From: Octopus sinensis
Taxonomy: Eukaryota
Reading direction: 5' to 3'
Length of the DNA stretch: 64,000 nucleotides
Assembly: GCF_006345805.1 (NCBI RefSeq)
Contig: NC_042997.1
Coordinates: forward strand, 206,274,001-206,338,000
How positions within the stretch are numbered: position 1 is the first letter of the stretch; the number at the start of each line of letters is the position of its first letter. This document shows, one piece after another, positions 3,038 through 6,000 of this stretch. The notes beneath the pieces were generated by a model, which did not search any database, was not told where the DNA came from, and saw nothing but the letters and a program-made list of their open reading frames with translations. Made by a program: the position numbers and the translations under genes.

Positions 3038-6000
3038 GTGAGTAAATAGATTCAAGTAACATAAATTTAATTGTTATTTCATTTCCAAATGAGGAATCGT
3101 TACAGTTAATTAAAACATTTTCTCAATCAAACTCAAACATTTTATTTCCTTCACATCTGATATCTTGAGTATATCTTTTGCTAACTTTAACAACCTCAAA
3201 CTTACTACAGCCATTTTGTAGAGCCTTTCTTAACAACAATATCAACTGCAACAATGTATCTCTCTTCTCTCCATGGAATGTTCCTTAGTTGTTTACCATT
3301 AATTACTTTTGTAGGTTGATGTCATCGTTAACAACACCAATAAAAACCTCCAGCTTAATGATGGTTCTCTTTCCAAATCTATTCTCAATGCTGCTGGTCC
3401 ACAGATACAAGATGAATGTAACCAGAAATATCCTCAAGGTATTTCTACATCTGAAATTGCCATCACTAAAGGATATAACCTCAACTGTGAGAATGTATTT
3501 CATCTGGCATTACCTCCCTGGGATGAAAATTCCTCTGATTCAGTAAGTATCAATCATATGATATTGATTTATTGAAACTTTTAATGTTTGAAGAGAACCT
3601 TATGCATGTTGTGTGAGAATCATAAAGCAAATGTCAGCATCCTGTTTAATATTTGTTCTTCCAAGTTATCATTGGAAGGAAGCAGAAGATATCGATGAAC
3701 AGGACACTTTTATATATAAATAGAAGGAAAAAAGCCTCATGGCCTAACAACAGTTATGTGACTGATAAATAAGACTATATTAAAACATATTTCTCTGTTT
3801 TACTCTCTGTATTGGTGAGTTTTTCTCTGTCATGGCACGAGCACTAGAGAGGTTGTCATGTCCTCAACAACACTAAAGACTCCTCTTGGGTCTGCATTGT
3901 CTCTCTTCATTCACCAACCATTTTACACGGTGGATTGGGTCTGTTTTATTGTAGCAGCATCATGAGTGAGGTTGCCTTGTCCCTTGCAGGACTAAAGAGT
4001 GATAGGAATGACAGTTGTGTTTAGAAGTGGTAGGAGTGAGAGGAGGATATATTTATTACAACTTAATGGTTTCTTCCTGTAATAAGAAAATAATTTAATA
4101 AAATGTTCATTATCAATTACTAAACAATTTTTTTTTTTTAGATTCTGGCAAACTTGACTCAAATAATAACCACTTGTCTGGAAACTGCTGAGAGAATGGG
4201 AGCAAAAATCCTTGCATTTCCTATATTAGGGGCTGAAATGAATTATCCCATTGGAAAAATACCTGTAACTATGTTTGAAGCAGTCAAAAACTACTCAAAT
4301 CTAAATTCAAGCCAGATCAAAGTTGTTTACATTGTTCTTCCAAACCACCCAGAGATAGAGAAGGTTGGTTGTTGTATTTATTGTTTGTTGTTTTATGTTG
4401 ATATTTTTGGAATTTGCAAAAAAAAAAAAGCCTACCGTAAATGAAGGAAATAGAACCAAAAATATGGAATCATTTCCTGACTTTATTTATTGGTTTTCTT
4501 AGATAGCAGAGATGGGAAGTGATGCTGAGAGGAATTTGGAGTGGAGGGCCCTACAGTATGTGGATGGAGGTGTGGGGAAGATGGCTTGTGGGGGAGTTTG
4601 ATAGACAACAGAATTATGTGTGAGAGGTGGGTCATGTTTGTAAGGGACATGCCTATTTGTATGGATGGTCACAATGTTACTTAGCTTATAAGATGAAATA
4701 TAAAAAAAAAACAATAAATAAAATATAAGAATGAAAGAATACAGAACAGAGTGAGTAATGTAGTCCTAGGTAGACTGTGACTGAATAAGAGTTTGCTTGA
4801 GTGACAGTTGAATGATGAAAAAGTGATTGTTGCATCTGGTGATTCCTTGTGTTGATGACCCCTTAGTTGTCTGATGGCCCCATCCAGTTGTTCAACGGAC
4901 TTCCTGCATCCTATCACAGTTTTACTCTATCATGATTACCTGCTGCAAAGATAACATCAACAACAATGGCAACAACAATCATCACAACAGATATTTCATA
5001 TCTGGAACCACCATTCCTTCCTCTACATGTTAGGAACATGGACTTTGCCTTGAAAGAGTTTTGTCTTGCTACAGAAACCAAAATGATAAAGTTTCTACTC
5101 ATATAGAATAAAGTGACTAACCATGTAAAATGCTAGTAAGACAGGAGACATGTTTTTGGAAATGGTTATTCCATTCAAAAAGTAAATAATTTCAGGTTGG
5201 TTCCATACAGTAAACTTACCAAAGGAATTTGGAGACAAAATGATTGATGTTTTGTTTAGATTTTCCAAAAAAGTTTGACAGTCAGCATCATTATGTTCCT
5301 GTGAAGAAGTTTCTTATAATTCCACCAGTCTTGTGTACAATTCTTAATTCATTAGCTTCAGAATCTTTCGGTTTCATCTGATAGTAGACGTTTCATTCTG
5401 CTTGGATATTTTCTCTATCATCCCACTATAGAGCACTTTGGTAAGCATCATCTACTAAGGCATCAGGAAAAAAAAAATTTTAGAGATTTAGCTTAGTCAC
5501 TGATGTTTTTTGGGGTTCAGCTTTAATTTATAGTCTAGTTTATCTCAACACCAACATCAACATAAAAATAAAATGGAAATTGTAGTTAAGACACCTGTGA
5601 CAGTGACAGGTAAAAAGCACCGTCCGAATGTGGCAGATGCCAGCACCGCCTGACTGGCATCTGTGTCAGTGACACGTAAAAGCACCAACTGATCGTGGCC
5701 GTTTGCCAGCTGCCCCTGGGACCTGTGCCGGTGGTATGTAAAAAACACCCACTACACTCACAGAGTGGTTGGCATTAGGAAGGGCATCCAGCTGTAGAAA
5801 CACTGCCAAACTAGACTGGAGCCTGGTGCAGCCTCCATGGCTTACCAGACTCCGGTCGAACCATCCAACCCATGCTAACATGGAAAACGGACGTTAAATG
5901 ATTATGATGATGATATATATATATATATAAATTAGAAAAAAATCACCTTTTATCAATTCAATAATGAAAAATTAAATTATACCATGTGGAAAATTACATA

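Follow-up and report, generated by a model that had tools for sequence, protein, structure and literature searches.

Diverged exons between near-identical introns in an Octopus array of PARP14-like macro-domain modules

How do the exons of duplicated modules come to differ far more than the introns that separate them? The question is raised by a 64,000-nt stretch of Octopus sinensis DNA (contig NC_042997.1, positions 206,274,001 to 206,338,000; herein the window, whose own numbering is used throughout) that contains three macro-domain modules, M1, M2, and M3, each built of exons A, B, and C. A sequence-only reading of this DNA had compared the three copies of exon B, taken the near-identical introns beside them as a neutral yardstick of recent duplication, and proposed that a loop of the adenosine diphosphate ribose (ADP-ribose) pocket, encoded by codons 7–30, diversifies under selection in a host–pathogen arms race. 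Here, we find that the identity of the introns is itself explained by concerted evolution, a conclusion that we hold with high confidence; for the locus as a whole we favor, with moderate confidence, a model in which concerted evolution of the non-coding DNA is combined with selection that keeps an old, mosaic diversity of exons.

Divergence of exons and introns among the modules

Between pairs of window modules, exon A differs at 16–22% of sites, exon B at 7–8% (its copies are 92–93% identical) and exon C at 13–17%, against 3.3–5.2% in the intron between exons A and B (intron A-B) and 1.5% in the intron between exons B and C (intron B-C) of M1 and M2. The latter intron, 611 nt long in M2, differs from its M1 copy by nine substitutions and one 12-nt indel, and the alignable part of the M3 copy is ~3% different. 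For M1 and M2, these figures amount to 76 differences in 585 exon nucleotides against 18 in 876 intron nucleotides (p = 8e-17); the same contrast is found for M1 and M3 (p = 2e-11) and for M2 and M3 (p = 5e-9), with odds ratios of 3.5–7.1 over the pairs. A diversity profile over seven modules remains at 0.01–0.07 in the introns and steps up within a few nucleotides of each exon border, to 0.16–0.22 in exon A, 0.12–0.14 in loop 1 (exon B), and at most 0.21 in exon C. An assembly artifact was considered and rejected, the same pattern being present in four independent assemblies.

The observations from which the sequence-only reading set out are hence reproduced, and the contrast between exons and introns is wider than it had claimed. 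Its counts of differing and non-synonymous codons in exon B were recovered exactly (12 and 11 for M1/M2, 14 and 13 for M1/M3, 13 and 11 for M2/M3), as was, in essence, its intron of ~600 bp with about ten substitutions and a 12-nt indel, and the macro modules do form an array, with three tandem copies in the window. The 14 differences that it placed in codons 7–30 of the M1/M2 pair are 14 of all 17 in the exon (14 of 18 for M1/M3 and 11 of 16 for M2/M3; binomial p = 2e-5 to 2.5e-3). The pocket loop is not the most diverged part of the module, exons A and C exceeding it.

As judged by profile matches and predicted structure, the modules are macro domains of the PARP14 macro-2 type, closer to it than to MacroD or macroH2A. 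The products of M1–M3 score 64–73 bits with the Pfam Macro family (PF01661; cut-off 22 bits), at E values of 1.6e-17 to 2.6e-20, and phmmer ranks macro domain 2 of PARP14 best (3q71 and 5o2d, 80 bits), ahead of PARP9 macro 2 (at most 57 bits) and of PARP14 macro 1 and macro 3 (46 bits). An AlphaFold2 model of M3 has a predicted local distance difference test (pLDDT) score of 86, exceeding 90 over residues 30–198; the first ~30 residues, which come from exon A, form a disordered Ser/Pro-rich linker of low confidence. Its top Foldseek match is 3Q71 (PARP14 macro 2 with ADP-ribose; template modeling (TM) score 0.81, root-mean-square deviation 1.6 Å, 30% identity), PARP14 macro 2 occupies ranks 1–4, and the top matches are all macro domains with TM scores of 0.7–0.8, in agreement with a three-layer alpha/beta/alpha fold. 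Exon B1 (228 nt), from which codons 7–30 are taken, runs from strand beta-2 through loop 1 and the helices alpha-1 and alpha-2 to two more core strands of the domain.

Introns as a clock and exchange between modules

To extend the comparison, the genomic DNA of nine further modules was taken from O. vulgaris, O. sinensis, and O. bimaculoides, giving 12 intact modules in all. Over their 66 pairs, the median divergence is 0.042 in introns (intron K), 0.162 at synonymous sites (dS), and 0.145 at non-synonymous sites (dN), and both dS and dN exceed intron K in every pair. The synonymous excess is typically 3–8 fold and is significant in the window pairs (p = 5e-5 to 1e-3). Because it is the synonymous sites that outdiverge the introns, selection on amino acids cannot be the source of the excess, and the near-identical introns fail as a neutral yardstick for the exons beside them. 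Module introns differ from those of the O. vulgaris orthologs by ~0.7–1.4%, a figure comparable to the 0.74% of the remaining ~15 kb of non-coding sequence, which indicates that they are not constrained. Substitution spectra are alike in exons and introns (e.g., A/G 30% vs. 28%); on this agreement, genomic hard-wiring of A-to-I editing was rejected, as were biased mutators of other kinds.

Species history separates the two kinds of sequence further. The species signal was measured in seven modules without large intron insertions, a ten-module set having been left aside in which three introns carry transposon insertions. The introns of the O. bimaculoides module are 2.63 times (95% confidence interval 2.0–3.5) farther from the others than these are from one another within the group of O. 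vulgaris, O. sinensis, and window modules, whereas the corresponding ratio is 1.00 (0.88–1.13) for exons and 1.03 (0.79–1.34) for third codon positions. Multi-nucleotide blocks with linked synonymous states are common to O. bimaculoides and a subset of the vulgaris-group modules, for example, at codons 42–44 of exon C (CCT-GGA-ATT vs. CCC-AGA-AC[T/A]) and at codons 62–66. A species signal that is present in introns and absent from exons means that the introns coalesce after the species split and that the exon variants date back at least to that split. The sequence-only reading had itself allowed that intron identity might be owed entirely to conversion limited to introns; this is close to what was found, as intron identity reflects concerted evolution.

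Exchange between modules appears to be continuing. Exons B2, C2, B3, and C3 differ from their O. vulgaris orthologs at 24 of 909 nt (2.6%), compared with 110 of 14,954 non-coding nt, so that their density in these exons is 3.6 times that of the non-coding DNA. They are clustered, with four in 37 nt (59971–60007) and six in 16 nt (61281–61296), five of the latter six being synonymous and all six states of that patch occurring in other modules. Indeed, all 10 differences between M3 and its ortholog are states present in other modules, as are 27 of the 35 between O. vulgaris module Ov6c and O. sinensis module Os8b. On the strength of this pattern of states, the clustered patches are read as gene-conversion tracts; conversions in introns would be invisible, since donor and recipient introns are already alike. 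The four-gamete test fails for 45–53% of informative site pairs in each exon, and the pairwise homoplasy index test for recombination is significant in exon A only. In the O. sinensis module Os8a, the upstream flank is of the M1 type (window 2–2751), whereas the body is of the M3 type and includes the M3 intron insertions, a structure that indicates unequal crossing-over and a module number that differs between the sister species.

Proposed selection on coding diversity and its alternatives

We hypothesize that unequal crossing-over and short-tract gene conversion would drive this module family. These exchanges would keep the introns and the other non-coding DNA internal to the unit near-identical within a species; the exons would resist homogenization, so that older variants, synonymous ones included, would be retained across species and reshuffled into mosaics. 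Alleles made less diverse by conversion would be selected against, to the advantage of a varied set of macro domains, and tightly linked synonymous sites would be carried along with the selected coding variants. Because only exons escape homogenization, selection on coding diversity is the most economical cause, and we infer that selection, rather than some other exon-limited process, maintains the diversity. The selected trait would be ligand or partner specificity, and pathogens would be the driving force.

Ratios of dN to dS do not identify such selection directly. Nei–Gojobori estimates for the three window modules give dN/dS of ~2 in exon A, 1.4–2.1 in exon B, 0.55–1.1 in exon C and 1.05–1.5 over whole modules, for which dN minus dS does not differ from 0 in any of the three window pairs (the bootstrap intervals include 0). 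In codons 7–30, where dN is 0.18–0.23, the ratio of non-synonymous to synonymous differences per site (pN/pS) is 3.8, 1.1, and 2.9 for the three pairs (Fisher p 0.12 to 0.57). Over the 66 pairs, the median dN/dS is 0.89 (range 0.55–1.50). A tree-free pN/pS, for which the minimum number of codon changes was counted in each column of the 12 modules (~318 inferred changes), is 0.95 overall, 1.50 in the linker, and 0.5–0.7 in core segments; for loop 1 with alpha-1, it is 1.26 and not significant (p = 0.35, 12 modules), so that wider sampling, too, yields no significant excess over one at the loop. Tree-based site models would yield unreliable positives here, given that about half of the site pairs fail the four-gamete test. 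An average ratio near one is unusual in a folded domain with intact frames, and the outcome leaves room for selection at individual sites, power being low and recombination rampant.

The distribution of variation over the putative binding pocket was surveyed in 23 distinct Octopus modules (numbering by W3 residues), with the pocket-lining segments defined beforehand from general macro-domain knowledge. The scaffold residues of the two pocket loops (N52, L58, L60, G63, S66, I69, L70, A73, F148, G152, G154, Y158, and P159) are invariant, and they include the motif residues of putative ADP-ribose binding (N52, G63, F148, G152, G154, and P159). The N-x-x-N motif and the single loop glycine, reported earlier to be kept, are indeed found in M1, M2, and M3, and over the 23 modules, the first asparagine and the glycine are invariant and the second asparagine is present in 21. 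Positions 57 and 62, both in loop 1, vary more than any others in the domain, the latter standing directly before the invariant glycine, and position 155 in loop 2 is among the five most variable; other highly variable positions (79, 133, 136, and 137) lie on helices away from the pocket loops. Enrichment of variability in the pocket segments is no more than a trend (mean entropy 0.74 vs. 0.52, Mann–Whitney p = 0.076; 6 of the 15 top positions, Fisher p = 0.085). Codons 7–30 do correspond to loop 1 and alpha-1, beside the invariant glycine. Loops 1 and 2 probably line the ADP-ribose site, to judge from a gap-free alignment to PARP14 macro 2, from general knowledge of the fold and from the placement of the Pro1130/Ile1132 loop of PARP14 at that site (PMC6008491). 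The G1055E form of Artd8-macro2 has been used as a binding-dead mutant (PMC5288732).

Several points weigh against the favored model. Values of dN/dS lie near one and are nowhere significantly above it, so that they do not demonstrate adaptive amino-acid change, and relaxed constraint has some share in the divergence. The cross-species argument draws on one O. bimaculoides module, from a 3-kb contig, and the exon/intron boundaries are sharper than simple tract-length models predict. Three of ~15 modules are defective by a frameshift or stop, which may reflect birth-and-death turnover or assembly errors. M1 departs from the pattern in two places: at 2989–3037, KGTIS replaces IDSIS, the beta-1 Asp is Gly, and 12 nt (VPVN) are inserted, and at 4232–4243, one codon of loop 2 is deleted (GA-EM vs. 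GAGxL), a loss shared by O. vulgaris Ov1 and O. sinensis Os8a. With the beta-1 Asp and a residue of loop 2 missing, M1 may bind poorly or differently, or not at all. The case for joining the modules in one gene (see below) is made from splice phases and from the predicted models of sister species, and tblastn found no PARP catalytic exon in the window or the fetched flanks.

Some of these points would also be expected if the exons were simply decaying neutrally under weak constraint, with diverged exons escaping identity-dependent conversion (an established mechanism) while the introns continue to be homogenized. The overall pN/pS and the median pairwise dN/dS, the defective modules and the loss of canonical pocket features in M1 all fit this explanation, which we nevertheless regard as unlikely. 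Neutral exons cannot outrun neutral introns, so drift could not have started exons diverging faster than unconstrained introns, and as all three exons and no intron have escaped, drift alone is insufficient. Moreover, splice sites and open frames are intact in each of the 12 full modules, which have in-frame indels only and no stop despite the 318 inferred codon changes; the 23 modules surveyed show no variation at the scaffold residues; and conversion patches still reach the exons.

A bolder form of the favored model would make the arrays a germline diversity generator, in which coding patches undergo micro-conversion among dozens of near-identical module scaffolds. The product would be a combinatorial repertoire of readers of ADP-ribose or its conjugates, with pocket-flanking loops of differing specificity selected by viruses or other parasites able to write or erase ADP-ribosylation, and the homogenized introns would be the homology substrate that sustains exchange and not its by-product. 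We offer this as a speculation of low probability.

The explanation with which the sequence-only reading began, recent duplication with neutral introns and exon differences produced by strong positive selection in an arms race, draws on real features of the data: dN in codons 7–30 is 5–10 times intron K, pN/pS of the loop is 1.1–3.8 and the two most variable positions flank the invariant loop glycine. Macro-PARPs are, in addition, antiviral genes of vertebrates with rapid evolution and frequent duplication (PMC4038475; PMC13224862). The precedent holds for the family and not for the site, as positive selection in primate PARP14 macrodomains has acted on surfaces other than the ADP-ribose site (Daugherty et al. 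2014, PMC4038475). The synonymous divergence of the exons is elevated over intron K along with the non-synonymous; exon variants, together with the synonymous states linked to them, recur in O. bimaculoides, although intron coalescence postdates the split; the differences between orthologs are mostly re-used module states with few new mutations; dN/dS does not significantly exceed one with wider sampling; and exons A and C exceed the loop in divergence. Taken as a whole, this explanation is improbable.

Input of variation confined to exons, by cDNA-templated conversion or by exon-targeted mutagenesis of the kind once proposed for conotoxins, would account for divergence that shifts within a few nucleotides of exon boundaries, for the clustering of ortholog differences in exons and for the joint rise of synonymous and non-synonymous divergence. 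However, the spectra carry no mutator signature, most new differences copy existing states and the features of an intron follow the type of its exons (M3 and Os8a have in common a type of exons A and B and, with it, the insertions of intron B-C), which points to exchange of genomic DNA; sharp boundaries are expected in any case, since tract ends in near-identical introns are invisible. We consider this input very improbable. Finally, functional conservation of the introns (for splicing control or RNA-editing structures), with the exons showing the true age of the duplicates, might explain why modules from different chromosomes and scaffolds have introns that are 95–98% identical, but it is scarcely credible when the introns of orthologs are as diverged as the remaining 15 kb of non-coding sequence, upstream sequence including a SINE-like (short interspersed element-like) repeat is equally similar among modules, introns accept insertions of 0.6–3.5 kb, and constraint would give no species-specific intron signal.

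The locus and its place among known systems

The nearest proteins to the window modules are "PARP14-like" predictions from O. sinensis, O. vulgaris, and O. bimaculoides (74–80% identity). In profile searches, four predicted models (P0015–P0018) consist of two macro modules with a short linker between them, and the same macro–linker–macro order is found in two further sequences (P0007 and P0008); three others (P0021–P0023) carry the window module type ahead of a PARP catalytic domain (PF00644), and the kind of linker that stands before that domain also closes the O. sinensis model P0015. The splice phases within the window are compatible with such an arrangement, exon C ending in phase 0, linker exon D passing from phase 0 to phase 1 and exon A starting in phase 1. 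Given the splice sites and phases of the linker exons, the three modules could belong to one long multi-macro gene, and M1–M3 could, by these predicted joints, be read into one multi-macro transcript. The second linker exon is identical in O. vulgaris locus L006. Exons for RRM, KH, WWE, and macro-1 domains were not found within the window. Remoter relatives occur in Argonauta and bivalves; one Argonauta hians sequence (P0019) has two macro modules nearly identical in protein sequence, and exon diversification may be specific to Octopus, or the Argonauta duplication may be recent. The features are listed in table 1.

Table 1. Features of the window, with defective modules of the fetched loci (L004–L007); one line per feature.
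Feature	Position	Strand	Basis or remark
M1 exon A	2889..3037	+	Ser/Pro-rich linker, then strand beta-1; splice sites, translation, alignment to octopus PARP14-like proteins
M1 intron A-B, 277 nt	3038..3314	+	3.3–3.7% different from its M2 and M3 copies
M1 exon B, 76 codons, phase 0-0	3315..3542	+	AG acceptor, GT donor
Codons 7–30 of exon B1	3333..3404	+	End of beta-2, loop 1 (N-x-x-N ... G), helix alpha-1
M1 intron B-C, 599 nt	3543..4141	+	
M1 exon C	4142..4363	+	Long helix, strand, loop 2 (one-residue deletion, GA-EM), C-terminal strand
Linker exon D, 18 residues + 1 nt	41150..41204	+	Phase 0 start, phase 1 end; fits splicing of C1 to A2
M2 exon A	47705..47841	+	Splice sites, alignment
M2 exon B	48119..48346	+	Splice sites, similarity to exon B1
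M2 exon C	48958..49182	+	Splice sites
Linker exon D, 27 residues + 1 nt	57456..57537	+	cag acceptor, gtaaac donor; fits splicing of C2 to A3
M3 exon A	59424..59560	+	Splice sites, alignment
M3 exon B	59833..60060	+	Splice sites; O. vulgaris ortholog carries 4-nt patch (59971–60007) matching other modules
M3 intron B-C, 1197 nt	60061..61257	+	~600 bp of insertions, common to O. sinensis module Os8a (L008 27533–28785)
M3 exon C	61258..61485	+	Splice sites; ortholog patch at 61281–61296
Ortholog of exon A3, O. vulgaris	L006 22614–22749		1-nt frameshift
Exon C of second L007 module	L007 27965–28193		Frameshift
Partial module	L004 4871–5512		In-frame stop, truncated exon B
Extra partial intron A-B copy and first ~25 nt of exon B	47371..47650	+	Followed by (TG)n; whole region 47371–47700
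Tandem 93-bp SINE-like unit, upstream of M1 exon A	2650–2840		
Tandem 93-bp SINE-like unit, upstream of M3 exon A	59208–59383		
161/320-bp repeat	17253–18055		
332-bp satellite	18107–28062		~30 copies, 96% matches
Long (TA)n/(TATACA)n tracts	13471–14352, 15372–15667, 16471–17003, 31404–32251, 33213–33574, 34199–36503, 38073–38354		
Decayed mobile element	30300–31115	-	
Decayed mobile element	37311–37820	-	
Decayed mobile element	62051–62500	+	
Neighboring open reading frames	14602–15111, 28669–29154, 36546–37298		No Pfam match

Just upstream of exon A2 lies an extra, partial copy of intron A-B that runs into the start of exon B and then into (TG)n, which looks like a rearrangement scar or an aborted module. 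A 93-bp SINE-like unit (GGGGTCAATTCATTCAACTAAAA...GGTGGTGCCCCAGCATGGCCACATTCGAATGACTGAAAG) stands in tandem just upstream of exon A in M1 and in M3, and a piece related to it is inserted in intron B-C of M3. The window as a whole has ~38% G+C and is rich in (TA)n tracts and satellites; the longest microsatellite tract extends over 2.3 kb, and G+C falls to 17–19% in some 2-kb intervals. The 332-bp satellite, which has a strong skew of G over C and is preceded by the 161/320-bp repeat, lies with that repeat (17253–28062) inside a putative 37-kb intron from exon C1 to the linker exon D. Two of the mobile-element open reading frames match the reverse transcriptase family RVT_1 (E 1e-17 and 1e-22); the third matches a DDE_3 transposase (E 3e-7).

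Positions 47869–64000 are colinear with O. vulgaris scaffold OX597842.1 (locus L006). An apparent structural difference between the species at window position 47868 was rejected, the break in colinearity being a 100-N assembly gap of that scaffold (L006 10899–10998); the gap sits in intron A-B of M2, the L006 sequence upstream of it is not colinear with the window, and the window spans a region left unresolved in that assembly.

The module shares with macro domain 2 of human PARP14 (ARTD8) the macro fold, a single glycine in loop 1 where other macro domains have G-G-G, and a loop 2 of the form FP-I-G-x-G, in addition to its being the best match in sequence and structure. Like the macro-PARPs (PARP9, PARP14, and PARP15), some of its octopus relatives are predicted to place a macro domain before the catalytic domain; unlike PARP14, which has three anciently distinct macro domains, the octopus repeats one macro-2-like module in ~75% identical copies. 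Clustered PARP14-like genes are also known from amphioxus and sponges (PMC13224862).

Homogenized introns around diverged exons are a signature of selection under gene conversion in the primate red and green opsins, RHD/RHCE, and colobine RNASE1 (Innan and co-workers; review in Genes 2011, PMC3924837). As in those cases, the octopus introns are homogenized and cluster by species, the exons are diverged and do not, and divergence peaks in the exons. Unlike those gene pairs with few functional sites, the octopus modules form a large multi-copy family over several chromosomes and scaffolds, and their divergence spans most of three exons, with variants arranged in mosaics. Exons several times more diverged than introns are also a feature of toxin and defense families (snake venom PLA2 isozymes, conotoxins) and of primate morpheus; in accelerated exons of the toxin type, synonymous divergence exceeds that of introns and dN/dS lies around or above one, which is usually read as acceleration after duplication. 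The octopus exons likewise outdiverge their introns, synonymous sites included, but whereas the toxins are secreted and accelerated, here an intracellular-type reader domain combines homogenized introns with old exon diversity. In the mammalian KRTAP1 repeats, coding sequence is homogenized and the flanks diverge, with an abrupt switch attributed to short-tract gene conversion and selection (bioRxiv 10.1101/282418); coding and flanking sequence thus follow opposite evolutionary modes in both systems, with the polarity reversed in the octopus modules.

A PARP14-like protein has been found in the skin mucus of O. vulgaris (PMC11431876). The octopus family of repeated macro-2-like modules with mosaic exon diversity appears to be undescribed so far. 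To our knowledge, almost nothing is known of the PARP14-type system of cephalopods; macro domains of this type read and erase ADP-ribosylation, a modification contested by vertebrate hosts and viruses. For studies of such families, the locus carries a warning that paralogous introns, if used as a neutral clock where modules convert one another, inflate apparent positive selection five- to ten-fold. For the biology of the animal, it indicates that, in Octopus, a single type of macro domain has given rise to arrays of modules whose coding sequence is diverse and whose surroundings are homogenized, and it offers a testable candidate for selection on the diversity of ADP-ribose readers in an invertebrate.

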